Shown: piece after piece, positions 11,157 through 23,958 of the stretch | Position numbering within the stretch: the stretch's first letter is position 1 | How the letters are laid out: the number at the start of each line of letters is the position of its first letter | The notes under the pieces: generated by a model | Databases searched by the model: none | Seen by the model: only the letters and a program-made list of their open reading frames with translations | Told to the model about the DNA's origin: nothing | Assembly (NCBI GenBank): GCA_021613535.1 | Contig: CP075494.1 | Location: 5,580,001-5,644,000 of the forward strand | Source: Adineta vaga | Lineage: Eukaryota; Animalia; Rotifera | Length of the DNA stretch: 64,000 bases | Reading direction: 5' to 3' | Translations under genes and position numbers: made by a program

Positions 11157-14090
11157 TTATCGCGAATGCTTTTGTAATTCCTTTATAATATTATCGAAAT
11201 TATTTCGTCGAGCTTCATTAACGGGAAGATTTCCCCATCGATCTTGATGTGTAACACCATCATAACCATATTTCATTAGAATTTTTATAACATTTAAATG
11301 TCCATTTGCTGCAGCATAATGCATTGGAGTTCTACCAAGATAATCTGCATAAAGTTCTCCTGTATTGAAATAACGTCGAAAAAATAATCCATCAATGCGT
11401 TCGGATTGACCAGAAGTAACTAAAGTTAAAAGAAAATGAATTTTATACCATTTATGCAATAGAGAAACAATCTCATGCTCATTTTCTTCTGTTGTTCGTT
11501 GAAATTCTTTGTCTATATTTTCCATAATAAAATTACACACTTGAAAATGTCGATTACGATAGGCATCATCTAACGGTGTTATACCCCATCGATCTTCTTT
11601 CAACATAATTTGTTGAAAACGTGTTTTTTCAGTAAATTTTGCTATGAATTCAATAGTTTCAAGTCTTCCATCGGAAGCGGCAACATGTGCAATCGAACGA
11701 GAATCGTAATCAAGACATTCGGACGCATTTAAATGTGGAAATTGTTGAAGAAAATGTGATACTTTCTTATTATCATTCTGAGCAGACACGATCCAAAATA
11801 ATGAAGGTAATAAAATTTCATCTAAACTTTTCACTAAACTTCTATCATCTTGTTTTTCCGTCGTTTTTCCTTTTGGCATTGGCATTGAAATAAATTTTTC
11901 TGGATTGATACTCAATGGATTATGTTGATGTGCTAATTTATCTAATAAATAAATTTGTATCGTTGAATCTGGTAATGTTAATGCATAGTCAAGTGCTGTG
12001 CGATGAGAATGATCAGGTATATCATACCAAACACGAGTTTTTTCAACTAAATAAGTAACAATATCAAACTGATTCGTAAGAACAGCGACATGTAATGAAT
12101 TTTTTCCATCATAATCTCCTATGTTGGGATTTAAACCGCATGAAATCAAACATTTAACAGCATCAAGATTTCCTTCGAATACAAATGCGTTCATATAGAA
12201 TGCTAATTCTCGAGATTTATCACCAGGTAATCGTGCACCATGAAGATAAAGATATGCAAGTAAATGAAAATGTCCATTCCATAAAGCATCAAATAAAGGT
12301 GTATTTCCATGTCGATCAACTAAATTAATATCAATTTTAACATGATCGATAAGCCATTTGGTTATTTTAAAATTTCCTTCCGATACACTAATATGTAATG
12401 GACTACGATAATTTTGGTCAGCGAATCGAGTAATATTCTCTTGTTTAATTAACATTTTTAAAGAATTAAAATCGTTGAGATAAACATATGAACACATTAA
12501 TATCGGAAGAAATTCTCCTTTGATTTTCGACAATTCTTCCCAAGTTAACTCATCATCGGTTGATAGGGAAAGATTTGTTAGATGATTTAAAAAATAAAAT
12601 TGATTTTTTATCAATTGTGAAACACGATAACGTCGATAATGATCTTCAGGAATACTAACTGATGTAACTTTAACGGCAATTAATTTGTTCGAACCAGCAA
12701 TCAAGCAAAATATCCAACAAATAAAAGTAAATGGAAATGTTAATGTTGGCATACCAACTGGATTTAAATAAGCTGAAATAGCACCTTGAAGAAGTATTGT
12801 CATTAATGATCCGTACAATGTAAATAACCAAATACTATAACCATAGAGAACAAAAAACATACCACCTAATGCTTGACATGTTAAAACAGTATTATAACCC
12901 CAAAGACCAGCATGAATCGATTGAGGCGATACACCTAGAAGATATGCAGCTATTAATTGACCTGTGACACTACCAAATAACGCGAAGAATGCTAATATTC
13001 GAGAACAAAGACAAACACCGACAAGAATAATTGCACCGGTATATGGACTTTCAATAAAATAGACTTGAGCAATACCAGCAAAGAAACCGACAAAATTATC
13101 TTCGACTGAATAACCGGGAAAGGTAACATTAGCTAAGTCAGGTTTTATATTGAATGTTGTTAATACGGAAGGAGATAATATTGTACCATCAATAAAGAAA
13201 TATCGATATCTGAAAGAGCCAAGTAACCACATCCAAGTACAAATTTGAAAACTAAATGTATATGGTGAAATTTCAAGCTTTTGTACGAGAACTTTACCAA
13301 TTGCCATGGCAAATATTGATGAAAATATACTCATAATTATAATTGGAGGAATCATTTGTGGTGAATGTGGAAAATTAAAATAAGCAATTCCCATTGCAGC
13401 TAAACATCCATTATATCCATATAGGCCTGATCGTATAGCACTCATATTAAATCCTAAAACATGTGCTGTAAATGTTGATACTGTTGTACCAAGAAGAGCA
13501 TATAAAGCTAATTCCCAATTTCCAATAAATAATCCAATGGTAATAATAATACCTGATAGAGGATTATTAGCAAACATAACTTGACTGATGCCACGAAAAA
13601 CTGAATCGAAAAAGATAAGTGTCAATCGATGATAGGGATGATTAGGAAGAAAACCATCTTGAGAATAGATATGATCCATTCCTGACATTGTTCCAAGAAA
13701 TGTTCGCCAAGTTAAACGATATTTTTTTCGTCGAGGTGGACGATGTCGATCAATATAAGAAAGAATGCGGTCAACACTTCGTTCATCAACTTTCAAGTGC
13801 GTTTTTTCATGTTCAGTTTTTCGAGAAAAAAGAGCACGTTGTTGTCTTGATGGACCTTCACCTAAATAATTTTCGGCAGTATTTAAACCTGATGACCATG
13901 CTCGATGTTCCGCTGGCTGGTCATGTTCATCTTCCGGAATCAAATTCAATGTTACATAATTTGAATGATGACCATGCGGAACTGCTGACCAACTACGAAG
14001 TTCTTTAATATCATTATCATTTGAAGAAATGATGGCTAGAAGAAAAACAATTGACTCGATGATTAGTTTGTTTTTGTTGATAAAAAACAC
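11157..14090 (-). CDS. Urea transporter (UT/SLC14 family) fused to C-terminal ankyrin repeats; true start exon uncertain
   Basis: UT motifs RGISQVMFANNPLSG, GLYGYNG, GIAQVY, GLWGYN, PTLTFPF and SIPEDH. Ankyrin pairs such as DYDSRSIAHVAASDG..DRWGITPLDDA and DYLGRTPMHYAAANG..DRWGNLP. Confidence 0.9.
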   Translation of the reverse strand: MFFINKNKLIIESIVFLLAIISSNDNDIKELRSWSAVPHGHHSNYVTLNLIPEDEHDQPAEHRAWSSGLNTAENYLGEGPSRQQRALFSRKTEHEKTHLKVDERSVDRILSYIDRHRPPRRKKYRLTWRTFLGTMSGMDHIYSQDGFLPNHPYHRLTLIFFDSVFRGISQVMFANNPLSGIIITIGLFIGNWELALYALLGTTVSTFTAHVLGFNMSAIRSGLYGYNGCLAAMGIAYFNFPHSPQMIPPIIIMSIFSSIFAMAIGKVLVQKLEISPYTFSFQICTWMWLLGSFRYRYFFIDGTILSPSVLTTFNIKPDLANVTFPGYSVEDNFVGFFAGIAQVYFIESPYTGAIILVGVCLCSRILAFFALFGSVTGQLIAAYLLGVSPQSIHAGLWGYNTVLTCQALGGMFFVLYGYSIWLFTLYGSLMTILLQGAISAYLNPVGMPTLTFPFTFICWIFCLIAGSNKLIAVKVTSVSIPEDHYRRYRVSQLIKNQFYFLNHLTNLSLSTDDELTWEELSKIKGEFLPILMCSYVYLNDFNSLKMLIKQENITRFADQNYRSPLHISVSEGNFKITKWLIDHVKIDINLVDRHGNTPLFDALWNGHFHLLAYLYLHGARLPGDKSRELAFYMNAFVFEGNLDAVKCLISCGLNPNIGDYDGKNSLHVAVLTNQFDIVTYLVEKTRVWYDIPDHSHRTALDYALTLPDSTIQIYLLDKLAHQHNPLSINPEKFISMPMPKGKTTEKQDDRSLVKSLDEILLPSLFWIVSAQNDNKKVSHFLQQFPHLNASECLDYDSRSIAHVAASDGRLETIEFIAKFTEKTRFQQIMLKEDRWGITPLDDAYRNRHFQVCNFIMENIDKEFQRTTEENEHEIVSLLHKWYKIHFLLTLVTSGQSERIDGLFFRRYFNTGELYADYLGRTPMHYAAANGHLNVIKILMKYGYDGVTHQDRWGNLPVNEARRNNFDNIIKELQKHSR

Positions 14091-15220: not shown

Positions 15221-16207
15221 TCAATATTTCTGTGATAGAACAGCCATCATACGAGGTAAAACATTTGTTAATGCAGCACTCCAACATGGAAAATCATGTC
15301 CTCCTTTACAACCTTGACCAATCGATGCTCCATTACCATAATCATTAAAATATACAGGAATATTCAATGATTTAAGTGTATCACGCATACGATAGTTTGT
15401 ATCACGAATAGTTCCTTCAAGAATTCCTTGATTACCTGTATAAATTGCCAATGTAACACCTTTTAATGATGCTGCATGTGTAATGGGATTTTGTGCGATC
15501 CATCCTTCTTTAGTCCATGGTAAAAGTGCAGCACCAAATGGTCCATCCAGAGGTTTTCCGTCGATAGTTACTGAACCTAAAATACCAGCTTGAATTCGTA
15601 AATCAAGTAAATCAAGTGCACCAGACAAGCTAGCAGCAAAAGCAAATCGATCAGAATACAATTCAGCATAACGCATAGCACCGAATCCACCCATTGAAAG
15701 ACCAATTAAAGCTCGTCCTTTCTTTTCATTCGTAGTTCGAAGATTTTGATCTATCCATGGTACTAATTGTTCCATATGAAATGTTCGCCAATTTTGTGGA
15801 GCAACATGACCAGGATTCACCCAATTTGTATACCATCCGAATTTTCCGCCATCAGGCATGACTGTAATTACAGAAGAATGACCGAGAATAGTTTGTGCTT
15901 TGCCGCTTGCTGTCCAATCAGCAGCATTACCAAGACTACCATGAAATAGATAAAGAACGGGATATCGACGAGTTTTACCACTACTCATATAATCACGTGG
16001 AAGAAGTATACGAACTTTTTGATCACCTCGTACAGCAGTTGTTGATAGAGTTAATTCATAAAGTTCATTGTTAAGTTTAGAAACAGAACGTACAGTGATA
16101 CCACGTGATGAAACAAAATTAGGTGCATCACTTAAACAAATAACTGTCAAATAAGATAGGATTATTGAAAGTATGGCGAAAAGATGGATACAAGTCATAA
16201 TTGACAA
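15221..16207 (-). CDS. Secreted alpha/beta-hydrolase esterase (antigen-85 / putative esterase family), bacterial-like
   Basis: Signal peptide, YPVLYLFHG, GWYTNW, GLSMGG nucleophile elbow, GGHDFPCW His motif. Intronless. Confidence 0.85.
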   Translation of the reverse strand: MSIMTCIHLFAILSIILSYLTVICLSDAPNFVSSRGITVRSVSKLNNELYELTLSTTAVRGDQKVRILLPRDYMSSGKTRRYPVLYLFHGSLGNAADWTASGKAQTILGHSSVITVMPDGGKFGWYTNWVNPGHVAPQNWRTFHMEQLVPWIDQNLRTTNEKKGRALIGLSMGGFGAMRYAELYSDRFAFAASLSGALDLLDLRIQAGILGSVTIDGKPLDGPFGAALLPWTKEGWIAQNPITHAASLKGVTLAIYTGNQGILEGTIRDTNYRMRDTLKSLNIPVYFNDYGNGASIGQGCKGGHDFPCWSAALTNVLPRMMAVLSQKY

Positions 16208-17172
16208 CGATATTGCAATTTATATAGATTATTTATAGGGCAAACGATCGTATGATAAGAAAAGTAACAACATTTAGAAACAGGTGATATCGTTCTCATA
16301 AGTTATAGGCCACTAACGCCTACAATGCAAGGACATATGGAGGGATGATCTAATTTATTTTTCTATCAGTACTATTCTTTTCTTAGTTCGGAATCAAATA
16401 TTATTGTCAAATAGTTATAGTCATATCTTTGATTCGATTTTCTGATGAATTGATATTCGACTATGAAAAAAGATATTTTCGTCACAAATATAATTAGTTT
16501 TGATTTACAATGTAAATTGTATCATTGCTACCACTGATGCTTTCTCAAATGTTATAAAATTCATATTTTCATCGCAAAACAATCATTTGAATATAAAACC
16601 ATTTGTAGAAAGAAAAAAGAAAATGTTGATAGGAAGTAAATAAAGCACGAGACTTGTGTATTATCCTTTAATATCGTCTATCGAGCAATATTACAGTTGT
16701 TAGTAAGTCAAATTCTATATCCTTATTCTCCTCTAACGTATGTTTATAGTTTTCGATAATAGTGTAAACATGGGATTTAATAATTCAAAGGCAAACATTC
16801 TTGCATTAGAAAAACGATAAGTGCTTCACAGATTGAAATTGAAGATATTATATTCTAGAAAATTTAGCAACACCACGACGACGAGCACATACAGTAACAG
16901 TAGCTTCTTATTCATCCAACTATAGTGAGTATATGCATTTATACAAATGTAAAAGTCATTCATGATCGATATATAAAAAGAAATGCAGAAATCGTTTCAG
17001 TAAGTATTGCCATTAGGTAGATATGAGTACATTGGTGTTTTTTTTTCTTATAGCTGAACCGTGGCGTCCGTGTCGATATGAATCACAATGGGATATTCAC
17101 GTGAATAAAATAAATACTTTTCATACTCTAAAATTTCATTACTATGAACTTTTTTTTATTTGACAATATCTA

Positions 17173-19881
17173 TTAGAAATATTCAGCAAGTCCTAAACGT
17201 CGTTGCTCATATTCACAAGGACATATACTCGAGTATTTACTACACACGTATTGTTTTGCATTGCCAGATGAGATTGATAAACTATCCGAAGTCAAACCAT
17301 AAAATTGTTCTAATCGTCTACAGCGTAGTTCGAGTGATAAATAGTGTAAAACATTTACCCTTCTTCCATTTAAATCTTCGTCTGATAAAAATACATGCTG
17401 ATCGTACTTTTCATCAATCGCAGAATATGGCCATCGAAAAGCATGAAAAAAGCTCGTTTCATTGATCAATTTTTGTTGCACATAATTTTCAAAATTTTGA
17501 ATATTTTTGATTGAGTCAATCATATTTGTCATAGTTTCAACATTGATTATTACACTAAATGAGTGCCAATCAATAAAACGTTCAAATGGAAGTACAATAC
17601 TTTCAGCTAATATCAATGGAATTGCACCGAAAGAAATCGATTCATACAGACGAGGTGACCATGGACTCACGCCTTCAAGACATAGGTGAAATATACTTGA
17701 ACGAATCGAATTCACATAATTATTCGATGTTTGATAACCATCAATAAATATCAAAGTATTCAATTCTTTCTTACCGAATATGGTTTTATTTTTATAGATA
17801 CGTTTCTCTCCAATTGTTTCTCGAACGAAAGATGAAAATCGTTGTCGAACTGAATCTTGTGAATTGGATTTATTTACTGTGCCAGCAAAGAATAAAAGAT
17901 TCTTCTTCTGTCTGTACCATTGATTCCAATCATAGTTCATCGTTACCGGTTTATTATTCAATCGTTGTAAACGATTGAACGGTGGAATGATAATATCATA
18001 GTTATGACGATATATTGGCGTTATATTTCTATGAAGATACAGAGGCTGTGCATAGTAAGGTAATAAATCTTGTCTAAAACCTGTTAATCCTAATTGAATG
18101 ACATTCTTGAGTCGATCTTGTATTGTACGATTTTGAACAACACCCATATTCTTTCCAAGTGTGAACGCTATCAAATGATTTGAACCAAATGTCATATTCC
18201 AAAAAGGAAACAGTTTTTCAATATTGATCAATAATGGTAGAAAATATTCGTGATTTAAACGTTTATAAAATGCTCGATATTCGAAATCTGTTAATGTTGA
18301 TCGATAATGATCAAGAGCCATACACGCATAATCATGTGGAATTATATAATAATCTGCTAGAAGAGGATCTTTCGACCAGATGATATCATGTTGAGATTTC
18401 GGATAGATGTTTTTCAATCGTTGAAAATAATCTTGTAAGATATATTCGACGGAATACATTTGATTAGCATGGACATTTCGACCACAATCCGTTTTCATTG
18501 TGGTTGAATAATTGCGATAGTGATCATTTTGAATAAGTTCAGATTTATTGTACATCCAAATACGTAAAGGTCTACGAAGAAGATCTTCAATTTTATATTT
18601 AGATCGATAAGTATCAATCTCATTCAACCAATCAACTGTCCGATCAAGATGTTGAGATGTCATCGAATGTTGACCATAAAGATCACCACAAATCTCTTCA
18701 CATATATCAAATCGAAATCTTTTCCAATCTTGGACGTAATCATGAAAATGGTGCTGTTCGATATCTGACCATGTTTTAGTTACATTCGGAAATTGTGTAT
18801 AATATAAAAAGTTTATTTTCATACACCAACAAGTATTTAATGTTCGATTCTTTGTGATATACTTCGCTTTCGTATGATGTTTATAAAAAAATTGAGATGA
18901 CCATGGTTTACAAAACCATTTATTGAAATTTTTATGCATATAATCAGAAGATATCGGTACTGGAGTAGAAATGGAAAGTTTAATACTCTCATTATGAGTA
19001 AGAAGTGAACCACCAAGACGAAAAGCATCTTTCCGAATATCGAATATAAGTTGCAGGTAATGATCTAATTTCAATAAACGATCATTCGTTGCATGAATAA
19101 AATAGGTTGGTGGAACAGGATTGAAATAATTCTTTGATTGATTATGAAAAAGACAATAATTATTTGTTATGAAACTTTTTCGTGAACAAAAATCAAAATA
19201 AAACCAATTAGCAAATATGGGATCTAGTACAAGTCGATTTTGTATTTCTCTATCATAGTCAGAATGAATAAGTAAACTTGGTTTATAACCTGGATATATA
19301 TATAAAATCTGAGCTTGAATTGGAAGAACACGACTAAGTAATGAACCCATACGTGAACCTTGACTAAGACCAAAAAGATAAAGACGAGGATAATGTTGAA
19401 ATTCTTTCAAATAAATACTCTTCATCCACATTCGAAAGGTCACATCGATCCAATAGACATCTCTATTCTTCTGTATAGGCATTCTTACAGTGTAATCTTT
19501 TTTATTTGTACATAGAGCAAGAATAGAATAGCCAGCGGAACGCATTTTTGAGAGAATTTTATCACCTACAGAAAATCCCCACCAATCGATACACGAACGA
19601 CCACGACCAGTTAGTAGAAGAATAAGACGTGATTCATTTGACGAATTTTGTTTTAAGTTCAATTCATAACGATATTCATAATGATACGAAGATGAAAGTG
19701 GATAAAATATCACATGATGTTTAGCGATTTCGACGGGTTTACATCGAGAATGATTCGCTTTTATTTGAATTGCATAAAAAGAATTTAATATTTTGTTTTG
19801 ACTTCGCATCAAATAAACAGTTGCAATTAGAAGATCAAGTAAAATTATGAAATATACAATACTTCGTACATCAAATTCCAT
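17173..19881 (-). CDS. Type II membrane protein: alpha/beta-hydrolase domain fused to an exostosin-like GT47 glycosyltransferase domain
   Basis: N-terminal TM. Hydrolase motifs GLSQG, PPTYFIHATND and QHSMT. GT47 motifs LRIWMY, DPLLADYYIIP, LLFFAG and SSIFHLCLEGVSPWSPRLYESISFGAIPLILAESIVLPF. Confidence 0.8.
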   Translation of the reverse strand: MEFDVRSIVYFIILLDLLIATVYLMRSQNKILNSFYAIQIKANHSRCKPVEIAKHHVIFYPLSSSYHYEYRYELNLKQNSSNESRLILLLTGRGRSCIDWWGFSVGDKILSKMRSAGYSILALCTNKKDYTVRMPIQKNRDVYWIDVTFRMWMKSIYLKEFQHYPRLYLFGLSQGSRMGSLLSRVLPIQAQILYIYPGYKPSLLIHSDYDREIQNRLVLDPIFANWFYFDFCSRKSFITNNYCLFHNQSKNYFNPVPPTYFIHATNDRLLKLDHYLQLIFDIRKDAFRLGGSLLTHNESIKLSISTPVPISSDYMHKNFNKWFCKPWSSQFFYKHHTKAKYITKNRTLNTCWCMKINFLYYTQFPNVTKTWSDIEQHHFHDYVQDWKRFRFDICEEICGDLYGQHSMTSQHLDRTVDWLNEIDTYRSKYKIEDLLRRPLRIWMYNKSELIQNDHYRNYSTTMKTDCGRNVHANQMYSVEYILQDYFQRLKNIYPKSQHDIIWSKDPLLADYYIIPHDYACMALDHYRSTLTDFEYRAFYKRLNHEYFLPLLINIEKLFPFWNMTFGSNHLIAFTLGKNMGVVQNRTIQDRLKNVIQLGLTGFRQDLLPYYAQPLYLHRNITPIYRHNYDIIIPPFNRLQRLNNKPVTMNYDWNQWYRQKKNLLFFAGTVNKSNSQDSVRQRFSSFVRETIGEKRIYKNKTIFGKKELNTLIFIDGYQTSNNYVNSIRSSIFHLCLEGVSPWSPRLYESISFGAIPLILAESIVLPFERFIDWHSFSVIINVETMTNMIDSIKNIQNFENYVQQKLINETSFFHAFRWPYSAIDEKYDQHVFLSDEDLNGRRVNVLHYLSLELRCRRLEQFYGLTSDSLSISSGNAKQYVCSKYSSICPCEYEQRRLGLAEYF

Positions 19882-20321
19882 ATTTATAATCTGTACAATG
19901 CACTGGAATTGAGATCGATACAAAATCCTTGAAATGTCTGTTCGTTTTTTGTTCTCTAATTTACAAATTCATACTGTTCGTGCATATGAAAGCGAAAAAA
20001 AAGGAATACTTACAACTATCTTCGTAAATATTATCGAATGAAATTAAGAAGAAATCGCGACTGTGACGCTCTCGCTTACATGTGCTGTACGCTTGCTATC
20101 TGTCCTTATTTCGATACATTTTGTTGCATTTTTATTACCTTTTCTTTCCTTCTATTGATGAATGAGTATATAAACGTATGTTTTGTATCAAAGCGACGCG
20201 ATTTAAGAAGAGATAAATAAAGGCGTAGTTCCATCAACGCATATATCTCTTCCATAAAAATCGTCACAACGACACAATCGGTTTTGAATAAACAAAATCT
20301 CGTACAAAAAAAAGACTAATC

Positions 20322-21386
20322 ATGCCATGCTCAAAAATGATCTTATTCAAAGCAATTGGTATTAGTTATTTCGTTCTTGCAAGTTATCATGAACCTTCAT
20401 TTATCTGCATTCCAATTCAATCATTTTTAGTCGCTTATTTTTTCTTCATTGTTGGTTATAATTTTAAACCGTTTTATAGTTTATGGAGTAAAATACGTTT
20501 CATAAAAGACAAAGCAGAACAATACATCCTCATGTACTTTGTCTATAACATTCTATTTGCACTTTTACGTACGTTTATTAATCTATATTTGGAAACAACA
20601 ATTCTAGGACCTTATCCGACGTTGTATAACTTCTTTCTTGAACCAATTTTTCAATCACGATTGTATCCATTAAGTGGATCAACATGGTTTTATCCACAAT
20701 TATTTCTAACAATTGTTATCGTTCAATTTATTTATTACAATAAAACGGAAAATATCTATATTGATGGAATGTATATCATTAGTTCAACTAGTTTATTTGC
20801 TATTGGAATTCATCAATTCGAAGTTCGAAATTATTTTCAAATACTTTTCATTCGCATAACATTTTCGTTAATTTTTACGTTTCTTGGTTATATTTACCAT
20901 CAATATTTCGAATCAAACAAAGAGAAATTATTTTTTACATCATTTTATTGTTTTCTCGCGTTTGCTCTTCTCAGTTGGATTCTTTATTTCTATCCGAACG
21001 TGCGATTTAATTATGTAAAAGCTGATTTTCAGCAACAACCTTTCTGGATTCCTATAATTCTCGGTTGTATTCATATTTATATTCATTTATTTTTAAGTTA
21101 CACTTTACAAGATATTCTAGACGAAAACGATATTCTTAATACCATTGCTAAAGAATCTTATCATATTATGTTTTTACATGGATTGTCATTTACATTGATA
21201 AATTTATTTGTTTTTAAATGTTTATTAAAGATGGATAATCAGATTTTTGAAATGTCTTTTCGATATAAACCAGATCTTACATGGCCATTCTATTTTGCAG
21301 GTGGCATTCAAATTCCAATTTTATTTATAAAATGTGTTCGATTTGTCAAAATGAAATGGTTTCCATTTTTATTTTCTTTCCTATAG
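20322..21386 (+). CDS. Multi-pass membrane acyltransferase family 3 (OafA/NodX-like O-acyltransferase)
   Basis: About 10 TM segments. KAIGI, FFFIVGY, STWFYPQLF and IAKESYHIMFLH motifs. Intronless. Confidence 0.75.
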   Translation: MPCSKMILFKAIGISYFVLASYHEPSFICIPIQSFLVAYFFFIVGYNFKPFYSLWSKIRFIKDKAEQYILMYFVYNILFALLRTFINLYLETTILGPYPTLYNFFLEPIFQSRLYPLSGSTWFYPQLFLTIVIVQFIYYNKTENIYIDGMYIISSTSLFAIGIHQFEVRNYFQILFIRITFSLIFTFLGYIYHQYFESNKEKLFFTSFYCFLAFALLSWILYFYPNVRFNYVKADFQQQPFWIPIILGCIHIYIHLFLSYTLQDILDENDILNTIAKESYHIMFLHGLSFTLINLFVFKCLLKMDNQIFEMSFRYKPDLTWPFYFAGGIQIPILFIKCVRFVKMKWFPFLFSFL

Positions 21387-21711
21387 ACAATAAAACATTC
21401 TATCTATCAGAATTGATACAATAGTAATTCCAAAAATAATCAAGTCTAAGATGATTCATGTTCTTATCGATCATAAAAATCCTAATTGGGAAAATTCTTT
21501 TCATGACTAAGATCGAGGCATGATAATGGAAATAAAAAACAAACCTTTTCTTTTCTTTTTTTGTACTTTAACATTAAATCACAGTCGAAACTTTTCCGCG
21601 GGTGTCGTCATAGTCAAACGTTAAAGCAACTATAAACACATACATACAAATGCTACTGTATAAAAGAGAACACTTGAAGACAATTCTCAAAAACACTGCT
21701 ACATCATTTCG

Positions 21712-22688
21712 ATGATGAAAACTACAAAAAGGTATGTATTGATTTCATTCTAACCGTCTATGATCGGCAATATAAAACATCTTTAGAAATATTATTACGG
21801 ATACCTTTTGTGTGGAATGTAATAGAACTGGACCAGGCCTTTTTCCATGTGCCGGTTGTGAGAATTCTTTTTGTTTCGAACAGTTGACAAAACATTTTCT
21901 CATTCAATTTTTGATTGGATCAATAAATGGGAACAAGAATCGATTGGTAAAATTCAACAAACAGCTGAATTAGCGAAGAACTTTATTCAGCTTATCAGAT
22001 GCAAAATTTCTTCGAGATCGAACTTATATAATGGACAGAACATGTAAATCAATTTCGAAAGGAACTAAATACACAATTAGCTGTAAAGGCTGTTACTGAT
22101 GATGCTTTATCACCTATTCATCTGATTAAAATAGTTTACACATCATCAACAACTGATCGTGATGTGAATGAATTAAAAAGCAATACGGATTGTTTCGAAA
22201 CGATTGCTGGTCCCCTTTTATTGTCGGAAGAGAATCGATTAGTAACCTATATCGTTAGTTTTTTTGGTACTTATGGTAGAGTTCGTTCTCTCAAACGATA
22301 TTCGAATGATATACACATGCTTCGTTTTCGAGTGAAAAATAAAGGAGATAATCCTATTTTTGTAGGGATTGTTTCTGAATCCAAACCATTTATTCCATGA
22401 ACTTATCGATTTTCATCAGCTTATGATTGGAGAGATATTGGTTTAGTAGTAAATCAAGGTCAATCAACAACTAAACTGACGAAAAATAAAACACAATATT
22501 TTCAGACTGGTGATGAATTACTTTTAACACTAGATTTAGATAGTAGACGTCTGATTTTGTTACATGAACGAACGAAAATATCTGATACATTAAATGTTGA
22601 TCTACAAAAATGTCCTTTACCATGGCAAATTGCTATTAGTATGGTTGGCATGAACGATCAAATGCGTTTAATTCATGAAGATAAATGA
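21712..22688 (+). pseudogene. Decayed B-box-like/coiled-coil/SPRY-like gene
   Basis: CVECNR..FPCAGCENSFC, INKWEQESIGKIQQTAE and FQTGDELLLTLD..CPLPWQ lie across shifted frames, with an in-frame TGA at 22398-22400. The first intron (about 21732-21787) is intact. Confidence 0.65.
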
Positions 22689-22866
22689 TTTTTCAGTTAA
22701 ATCGATTATTTTCTTTTAGTGAAACAATAAAGACGTTTAGTTCTTGATTTTCAACTATGTGCAGATAAGATTCACTAATTATTTAGCAAAAAGAACGATT
22801 TCTTCTCTTCTGTATCTCGTATATAATGACCAAGTTTCTTTTGTCGTTTTATCTTCTTTTGTCATT

Positions 22867-23727
22867 ATGGCGTCAACAAAAGAACAACAACGTGTGATTC
22901 TTGTCACAGGTGCAAACAAAGGCATTGGATTTCATATTGTTAAAAGACTTCTTGAACAATCATCATCTGAGGATACAGTAATTCTACTTGGAAGTCGTGA
23001 TTTCGAACGTGGTCGAAATGCAATCGAACAATTAGGTGCCCCATCCAATGTTCATCTTCTTCAATTAGATGTCTCCTCGGTAGACAGTATCAATCAAATA
23101 GTCAATGAAATCAAAGAAAAATATGGTGGTCATTTGGATATAATTATTAATAATGCTGGTATACTCACTAATGAGATAAACGTCGATGTCGCTCGAAAAT
23201 CTTTTGCTATTCATTATTATGGTATTAAACTTTTAAATGAAAAATTATTTCCTATTATTCGAGAAAATGGACGGATTATTAATGTATCTAGTCAAGTAGG
23301 TGCCGTCGCATTGTATGAATCATCAAATGAACTTCAAGATAAATATACATCGCCATCATTAACGATAGAAGAACTTGATCAATTAGTGGAAGATTTTATT
23401 TCAGCTATCGAAACGAATACTCTGGAAGAAATTGGTTATCATAATAAAACATTTTCAGTAATATATGGTGTATCAAAGGCAGCATTGAATGCCCTGACTC
23501 GAATCGAAGCACGAAAATGGGGATCTTTAAAAAATCTCCTTGTTATCTCGGTTACTCCAGGATTTTGCGCTACTGATATGACCGAACATGCATCTAATGC
23601 TCGTTCCCCCGAATTAGGTGCAGATTCGATTTTATATGCAGTTAATACGCCTCCACATGAACTACACAATGGCGGATTCTATCGTGATGGGAAACAACTA
23701 CTACTCATTTCCCCACCCACAACATAA
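22867..23727 (+). CDS. Carbonyl reductase-like short-chain dehydrogenase/reductase
   Basis: TGANKGIG, LDIIINNAG, NVSS, YGVSK and PGFCATDM motifs. Confidence 0.9.
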   Translation: MASTKEQQRVILVTGANKGIGFHIVKRLLEQSSSEDTVILLGSRDFERGRNAIEQLGAPSNVHLLQLDVSSVDSINQIVNEIKEKYGGHLDIIINNAGILTNEINVDVARKSFAIHYYGIKLLNEKLFPIIRENGRIINVSSQVGAVALYESSNELQDKYTSPSLTIEELDQLVEDFISAIETNTLEEIGYHNKTFSVIYGVSKAALNALTRIEARKWGSLKNLLVISVTPGFCATDMTEHASNARSPELGADSILYAVNTPPHELHNGGFYRDGKQLLLISPPTT

Positions 23728-23958
23728 GAAACTCAAGTGGAGCAAATAACCTTTTTGATTCGAATATTTGAATTATACTGTTCTTTTTTTTTTGTTTTGT
23801 TCTTTACTACTTATCTAATTTTATTCAGTTGGTCTCTTATCAAATTTGATAACTAAGAATACAAAATGATAAGTATTTTTCTGTGTTGATATCGTTTGAA
23901 AATCGTGTTCGTTATAATTATTTCTATTAAATCGTATCATATTCCTACATAAATATCA

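Follow-up and report, generated by a model that had tools for sequence, protein, structure and literature searches.

The stretch of DNA examined here, called the window throughout, covers 64,000 nucleotides in the genome of Adineta vaga, a bdelloid rotifer (G000:C5:5580001-5644000, in an assembly of six contigs and 100.8 Mb), and it contains three neighbouring genes that had been proposed to form one co-regulated pathway of glycan synthesis, O-acylation, and deacylation: a secreted esterase, a fusion of an alpha/beta-hydrolase domain with a GT47 glycosyltransferase domain, and a membrane protein related to acyltransferase-3 (AT3). Our favoured reading, to which we give about an even chance of being right, is that of a conserved two-gene module, made of the hydrolase-GT47 fusion and an AT3-like partner lacking the catalytic His of its family, which lies beside an unrelated esterase, the two paired proteins perhaps sharing a role on a glycan.

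All three genes are complete, uninterrupted open reading frames (ORFs), at 15221-16207 and 17173-19923 on the minus strand and at 20322-21386 on the plus strand, as expected from the earlier description of three neighbouring intronless genes; their homologues can be aligned over the full length with no gap pointing to introns, and the RNA-like contigs of the esterase are collinear with the genome. The spacer from which the fusion gene and the AT3-like gene diverge had been put at about 440 bp and measures exactly 440 bp (19882-20321), and the secreted GxSxG esterase does lie directly 3' of the fusion gene, with which it shares the strand, across a gap of 965 bp. The domain calls made in the original prediction also hold, by Pfam for PF00756 and PF03016, by a Pfam score below the cut-off backed by fold and relatives for PF01757, and by fold for the hydrolase part. 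The fusion gene and the AT3-like gene are each present in a single copy in the A. vaga genome, and searches of this same genome with both of them and with their neighbour genes found no second (homoeologous) syntenic block.

The evidence that carries the two-gene reading comes from the comparison of loci. In all four AT3 loci that include the upstream flank, namely the window and loci L013, L022, and L023, which come from three different samples, the fusion gene stands head-to-head with the AT3-like gene (L014 and L021 lack this flank), so the conservation in relatives that had been asked of the pair was indeed found. In L013, L022, and L023, both paired proteins are 54-58% identical to the A. 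vaga copies, the spacers measure approximately 739, 434, and 197 bp, respectively, and the fusion proteins group within bdelloid sequences. A tree built from 38 fusion proteins places the four AT3-linked genes inside one ten-member clade (clade A, SH-aLRT 100), where they are found on both sides of its basal split, and therefore the linkage is most simply explained as ancestral to this clade. The AT3-like gene was never found apart from the fusion gene, which in turn is often found alone, and this one-sided pattern fits an accessory partner and also fits plain descent. When metagenomes were scanned with the AT3 alignment, a single short contig came up, which brought no further upstream sequence. 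In the tree, the sister of the A. vaga copy is the fusion protein of the L022 contig (SRR10663368, 3544 bp), a protein flagged for its deviant composition.

The third gene does not belong to this conserved set. In the congener Adineta steineri, a contig collinear with the window carries the same TGF-beta gene, the same 3-hydroxyacyl-CoA dehydrogenase gene (HCDH, 80% identity), and an esterase orthologue with 85% identity, so that the esterase occupies the same syntenic site there without either the fusion gene or the AT3-like gene. In A. steineri, the interval between HCDH and esterase (L026:4384-9932, 5.5 kb) is taken up by a kinase/zf-CCHH gene together with an unknown gene of 418 aa. It shows no similarity to what lies in the same interval of A. 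vaga (16208-23958, 7.7 kb), namely the short-chain dehydrogenase (SDR), zinc-finger (zf), AT3, and fusion genes, and from this comparison we conclude that the fusion-AT3-zf-SDR block is a unit that adjoins the esterase in A. vaga only. The synteny also breaks past the esterase, where A. vaga has a urea-transporter/ankyrin gene vs. an ART/TPR gene in A. steineri. The best A. steineri homologue of the fusion protein is 44% identical and lies in another genomic context, and no esterase of this kind was found close to any of seven other fusion loci; thus, the three-gene set is not conserved in relatives, contrary to the case of the pair. Judging from these gene orders, the esterase is a chance neighbour and not the deacylation arm that the original prediction made of it.

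The esterase itself reads as a secreted, CE1-like serine esterase of the PF00756 family (E 5.9e-30, 105.3 bits against a 22-bit cut-off), of 328 aa from a TTG at 16207 or, as we consider likelier, of 325 aa from the ATG at 16198 (15221-16198, minus strand). It has a hydrophobic, signal-like N-terminus, as read from the sequence, and a GLSMG nucleophile elbow with Ser168 at 15695-15697. Its family in A. vaga comprises five intact paralogues and one broken copy, spread over C1, C4, and C5, and no paralogue is near a GT47 gene anywhere in the A. vaga genome. The broken copy (G000:C1:11654738-11655504) is in three pieces with a TAA and lies 10 kb from an intact paralogue (C1:11666525-11667496). 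The nearest esterases outside rotifers belong to Actinomycetota, with 45-49% identity over more than 90% of the length, several of them carrying a CBM4_9 domain (PF02018), a pattern typical of bdelloid genes derived from bacteria, the gene here being apparently acquired separately; a digestive role is more likely for it. The foreign origin previously suggested for the cluster is borne out, as bacterial-type ancestry, for the esterase and for the AT3-like gene.

Regarding the fusion protein, its ORF has 916 aa from a TTG, and the ATG at 19881, which gives 902 aa (17173-19881, minus strand), was judged the likelier start. From this ATG, six residues are followed by a 19-residue hydrophobic anchor (again read from the sequence), and the protein contains 17 Cys, of which six are invariant among homologues, as well as 15 N-glycosylation sequons; together, the anchor, the sequons, and the cysteines would place the catalytic part in the lumen, as in proteins of type II membrane topology. 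No match to the N-terminal ~400 residues was obtained in Pfam, nor in the PDB by sequence or profile. Their AlphaFold2 (AF2) model, made with 29 homologues in the alignment, reached a pLDDT of 85.8 and a pTM of 0.87, and it matched feruloyl esterases and monoglyceride lipases with a Foldseek probability of 1.0 and E-values down to 3e-8, esterases and a polyhydroxybutyrate (PHB) depolymerase in VIA-align with Z of 15-17 and an rmsd of 2.6-3.2 Å over 190-224 residues, and PHB-depolymerase-type esterases in the ESM Atlas with TM of 0.5-0.6; a feature search of the ESM Atlas with the same domain returned unnamed clusters only. By its predicted structure, the N-terminal half of the fusion protein (18592-19719, minus strand) is an alpha/beta-hydrolase fold of esterase-like type.

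This hydrolase domain is likely to be catalytically competent, as its model and its conserved residues suggest. In the model, strand 137-143 and helix 145-153 bracket a GLSQG nucleophile elbow with Ser173 (19363-19365), the putative acid Asp267 (19081-19083) follows the next-to-last core strand (model residues 230-235), and the putative triad His405 (18667-18669) comes just before the final long helix, separated from model strand 271-276 by about 100 inserted residues. These three residues are conserved in 25 (Ser173), 27 (Asp267), and 27 (His405) of the 29 homologues.

The C-terminal half matches PF03016 (Exostosin_GT47) with an E-value of 2.3e-31 and 109.7 bits against a 33.4-bit cut-off, over ORF residues 451-805 and profile positions 3-289 of 293, and the same match was seen again in the genome scan; this exostosin-type, GT-B domain occupies 17509-18573 on the minus strand. 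It resembles human EXT2 and EXTL3 no more than marginally (E 6e-5 over 75 residues), its likeness to characterised enzymes being too slight for a specificity to be deduced, and by language-model features it comes nearest to haptophyte and streptophyte GT47 clusters, which we take as a lead only. The full fusion architecture is present in 35 database proteins, those with a named source being from Didymodactylos, Adineta steineri, and Rotaria, and the database labels mention the GT47 protein only. We found no known GT47 enzyme with an N-terminal alpha/beta-hydrolase domain, and our literature search for GT47 in rotifers or for a hydrolase-GT47 fusion found no paper describing either. Besides the fusion gene, the genome scan detected three further GT47 loci in A. 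vaga.

The partner of the fusion gene encodes a membrane protein of 354 aa (20322-21386, plus strand) whose AT3 membership is less obvious at first sight, since it scores 22.7 bits against PF01757 (Acyl_transf_3), below the 31-bit cut-off. It has five close homologues in a word-indexed database, with 54-61% identity, two of which pass the same cut-off (P0002 with 35.3 bits and P0005 with 34.1 bits), the three others being below it or without a match. A profile of this clade, run against 1.8 billion representatives, recovered 377 relatives at E <= 1e-3, and the nearest relatives that bear the His have profile E-values of 1e-35 to 1e-25, about 25% identity, and lengths of 350-380 aa; two of the nearest are named "fucose 4-O-acetylase-like acetyltransferase" in IMG. 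A scan of genome contigs with an alignment of His-bearing relatives showed AT3 relatives of this NolL-like group to be common across bacteria, including Clostridia, Melainabacteria, and Bacteroidota. A PDB search with the AT3-like sequence profile gave no match. The AF2 model of the protein (pLDDT 90.5, pTM 0.90) has the solved TmAT-fold acyltransferases HGSNAT and GWT1 as its only credible PDB fold matches (TM by query 0.40-0.50), no other reaching a probability of ~0.9. On the strength of the model and the profile relatives, we consider the TmAT fold, with its ten-helix core, and the kinship with the AT3 family to be real. At least 18 other A. vaga loci score above the PF01757 cut-off, and the AT3-like gene is an outlier within this large AT3 superfamily of the genome.

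Two AT3 genes that stand closer than the other outgroups, L024:8001-9005 and L025:8001-9092, are 33-37% identical to the AT3-like protein and lie on eukaryote-like contigs from a long-read metagenome that also holds L013 and L015; there is no fusion gene within 8 kb of either, and A. vaga seemingly lacks an AT3 gene of this type. As outgroups, they inform on one catalytic site, for the L025 copy (P0043, 33-37% identity) keeps the Gly-His of transmembrane helix 1 (TMH1), and the other starts too late to show it.

The residues of this site deserve attention. AT3 enzymes carry an R/K-X10-H motif in TMH1, of which the His was described as "absolutely conserved", together with an RXXR motif on the cytoplasmic side of TMH3, as set out in a study of OafB (PMC9833829); the four residues of R-X10-H and RXXR are experimentally essential in several AT3 enzymes (PMC9833829). 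We set the six rotifer clade members against 150 relatives. At position 10, Lys is present in all six clade members, and the relatives have mostly Lys or Arg. At position 21, the site of the catalytic His, two members have Ser and four have Asn, against His in 127 of 131 aligned relatives; the A. vaga residue is Ser21 (20382-20384). Position 63 is Asp or Glu in the clade (Asp63 in A. vaga, 20508-20510) and Lys or Arg in 101 of ~137 relatives, and position 66 is Glu, with Arg in one member (Glu66 in A. vaga, 20517-20519), as compared with Lys or Arg in 97 of ~137 relatives, so that K64 alone is retained at the basic TMH3-face site. Position 113, the loop His of the GHQ motif, is Arg in the clade, His being commonest in the relatives. 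His23 was considered as a displaced catalytic His and rejected, given that two of the six members have Tyr there and that TMH1 would have to accommodate a shift of two residues.

What the clade has kept, and what it has gained, is also informative. The universally conserved W122-F123 and H286 are present, and R83 (20568-20570; Thr in relatives), R113 (20658-20660), and E278 (Asn in relatives) are invariants specific to the clade, which may make up for the basic residues that were lost. The six ORFs are all intact, the mean column identity is 69%, and dN/dS is 0.17-0.35 in the pairs with estimable dS, the most diverged pairs being left out because their dS is saturated; the gene is thus kept under purifying selection. 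Two signs in the acyltransferase had been named beforehand as jointly telling against the proposed cluster, and one of them, the loss of essential residues, was found, whereas the other, an absence of purifying selection, was not. The canonical "O-acylate" step of the original prediction is weakened accordingly, with a clade devoid of the TMH1 His and with the basic residues of the RXXR-equivalent site replaced. Nevertheless, GWT1 is an active TmAT-fold acyltransferase without a catalytic His (PMC12423673), and because of this precedent the residue loss is less damaging to the handling of acyl groups in general than to the idea of a canonical AT3 enzyme.

The spacer between the two paired genes contains a 207-bp repeat (20063-20269). 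Its termini are TGTGACG...CGTCACA, it carries a TATA box and an AATAAA signal, and it is flanked by a near-perfect duplication of 5 bp; the genome has at least 40 copies of 74-89% identity with sharp common boundaries, many of them near chromosome ends. From its TG...CA termini and its copies, we read it as a solo long terminal repeat (LTR) pointing at the AT3-like gene (plus strand). It makes up nearly half of the 440-bp spacer, which would measure ~233 bp without it. An Rfam search of the intergenic region gave no match, and a spliced-leader or other small RNA gene was rejected for this element, since the TG...CA ends, the TATA box, the AATAAA, and the copy number fit a solo LTR better.

Expression was followed in the assembled contigs of four probable RNA runs from four studies over 15400-21399, in which levels cannot be ranked. 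The esterase has error-free RNA-like contigs in all four runs, ending near 16199, and the AT3-like gene has thin yet exact RNA-like coverage in two runs; an error-free AT3 contig begins inside the LTR-like repeat at 20238 and runs into the coding region, so that the repeat may supply the transcription start of the AT3-like gene. At 20207-20260, there is a very deep RNA signal derived from related repeat copies, corresponding to an abundant short polyadenylated RNA, and in one run the start and the end of the repeat transcript are marked by cDNA 5' adaptors and poly(A) tails. In this coverage, the esterase contrasts with the AT3-like gene and with the fusion gene, which is scarcely covered, and the difference speaks against one regulon for the three.

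In the two-gene reading that we favour, both proteins would reside in the Golgi and act together on one glycan, the GT47 domain adding a sugar or extending the glycan and the hydrolase-fold domain adding or removing an ester group on that polymer. The AT3-like protein, being His-less, would no longer be a canonical acetyl-CoA-dependent transferase, and it would work instead as a non-canonical conduit, or as a docking partner, for the hydrolase-fold domain; alternatively, within this same two-gene scheme, it may be a non-catalytic accessory. The idea of a conduit is modelled on bacterial AT3 domains, which pass acyl groups to a fused SGNH domain. A bolder version, speculative and quite improbable in our opinion, is that the AT3-like protein and the hydrolase domain together would be a split Golgi counterpart of the bacterial AT3-SGNH O-acyltransferases, fused to the GT47 enzyme that makes the acceptor, that is, a foreign-derived machine to synthesise and acylate in an animal, with a transmembrane mechanism of acyl transfer that does without the canonical His or Arg.

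Several observations weigh against the joint action of the two proteins. Four fusion loci of the same clade have no upstream AT3 gene in the flank that could be seen (8 kb in L015, 1.4 kb in L017, 2.1 kb in L018, and less than 1 kb in Didymodactylos L019/L020), which implies that the fusion protein does not need the partner; the fusion gene has short, partial RNA-like matches only; L022, one of the four linked loci, has a GC content of 55% vs. ~30% in A. vaga; and the zf-like and SDR genes located 3' of the AT3-like gene are conserved as well, so that plain synteny could explain the pairing equally well. This last point leads to the rival that we take most seriously, although we hold it to be clearly less probable than the two-gene module: that the fusion and AT3-like genes are neighbours by inherited synteny and without any functional connection, some lineages simply having kept them together, and that the AT3-like protein is a diverged membrane protein with an unrelated role. 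The zf and SDR genes show no evident functional relation to the pair and are conserved next to the AT3-like gene at similar divergence, half of the clade-A fusion loci do without the AT3 gene, the linked loci known are only four and could stem from few independent lineages, and the later LTR insertion in the A. vaga spacer makes a shared promoter less than evident. On the other hand, local gene order is labile, to the point that A. vaga and A. steineri, with orthologue identities of ~80-85%, differ at exactly this interval, and still the pair persists at 54-58% identity in four of four loci, with the AT3-like gene never apart from the fusion; furthermore, an acyl-handling fold beside a hydrolase-glycosyltransferase fusion is a functionally coherent combination.

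The two remaining rivals keep the AT3-like protein as the catalyst. In one of them, it would still be a working acyltransferase by means of other residues, as in GWT1/PIGW, and the pair would be a unit that synthesises and acylates with AT3 as the catalyst. The activity of GWT1 without the catalytic His (PMC12423673), the purifying selection, the invariant R83, R113, and E278, and the preserved H286 and W122-F123 all speak in its favour; however, the R/K-X10-H and RXXR residues have been essential wherever tested in the AT3 family (PMC9833829), three of the four are lost here, and two of these are now acidic and would repel the phosphates of CoA, so that we judge this mode of action improbable. 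Less probable still, indeed very improbable, is the complete co-regulated three-gene pathway, in which GT47 builds the glycan, AT3 O-acylates it by the acetyl-CoA mechanism, and the esterase deacylates it. Its appeal is understandable, given that three intact genes lie side by side and have the predicted domains, the fusion-AT3 pairing is conserved, and the esterase family includes carbohydrate esterases, with bacterial relatives that often carry CBM4_9. Against it stand the A. steineri esterase at the same site without the other two genes, the esterase paralogues dispersed away from any GT47 gene and the absence of an esterase from seven other fusion loci, the AT3-like clade deprived of the His and basic residues of the canonical mechanism, and an RNA-like coverage of the esterase that is sharply unlike that of the other two genes.

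Comparison with known systems helps to place the favoured two-gene module. It resembles the bacterial AT3-SGNH O-acetyltransferases, such as OafA/OafB of Salmonella and OatA of Staphylococcus (PMC9833829, PMC7448272), in having a multi-pass TmAT-fold part and a serine-hydrolase-fold domain across the membrane, presumably acting on a glycan here as well. In contrast, the rotifer parts are separate genes, the hydrolase is of the alpha/beta type rather than SGNH and is fused to GT47, and the AT3-like part is devoid of the motif His and of the RXXR-equivalent basic residues. The standalone NolL-like AT3 proteins (COG3594, "fucose 4-O-acetylase-like") are the nearest His-bearing relatives and have a similar length, but the rotifer protein has Ser or Asn for the TMH1 His, Arg for the GHQ loop His, and Asp or Glu for the basic residues before TMH3, and its gene adjoins a eukaryotic-type GT47 gene in an animal genome. 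GWT1/PIGW, the inositol acyltransferase of the TmAT superfamily, is among the few PDB fold matches of the AT3-like model, yet it has no detectable sequence relationship with it, belongs to another branch of the superfamily, and has the inositol of glycosylphosphatidylinositol (GPI) as its substrate. As for the fusion protein, it shares PF03016, the type II layout, and a presumed Golgi glycan synthesis with exostosins and plant-type GT47 enzymes (EXT1/EXT2/EXTL3; MUR3/IRX10-type), from which it differs by its only marginal similarity to exostosins and by the N-terminal alpha/beta-hydrolase. Lastly, the esterase is close to the secreted CE1-type/PF00756 esterases of Actinomycetota, including those of Solirubrobacterales, Actinoallomurus, and others, in its identity and its GLSMG elbow, and it differs from them in being part of a small paralogous family in an animal genome and in its eukaryote-style signal peptide.

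If the fusion and AT3-like proteins do work together, they would constitute an animal case of glycan synthesis coupled to ester modification through a bacterial-type partner, and also a natural test of whether an AT3/TmAT protein is able to function without residues thought to be indispensable. The hydrolase-GT47 fusion, for its part, is common to bdelloid rotifers. We suggest keeping in view that adjacent, horizontally acquired genes of bdelloids are easily mistaken for a pathway, as a comparison with one congener was enough to remove a third of the cluster.

Among the neighbouring genes, the zf-like gene 3' of the AT3-like gene is intact in L014 and L021, where it encodes 333 aa, and is a frameshifted, decayed relic in A. 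vaga (21812-22673, plus strand), recovered by tblastn as three pieces in three frames with short ORFs only. It is followed by the SDR gene (22867-23727, plus strand), a member of a large family, with 68% identity to the L014 copy. On the other side of the esterase, at 11157-14090 on the minus strand, a 977-aa ORF combines a urea transporter (PF03253) with ankyrin repeats, and the sole other copy of this urea-transporter/ankyrin gene, on C3 (3574636-3577321), is 41-44% identical to it and interrupted by stop codons.

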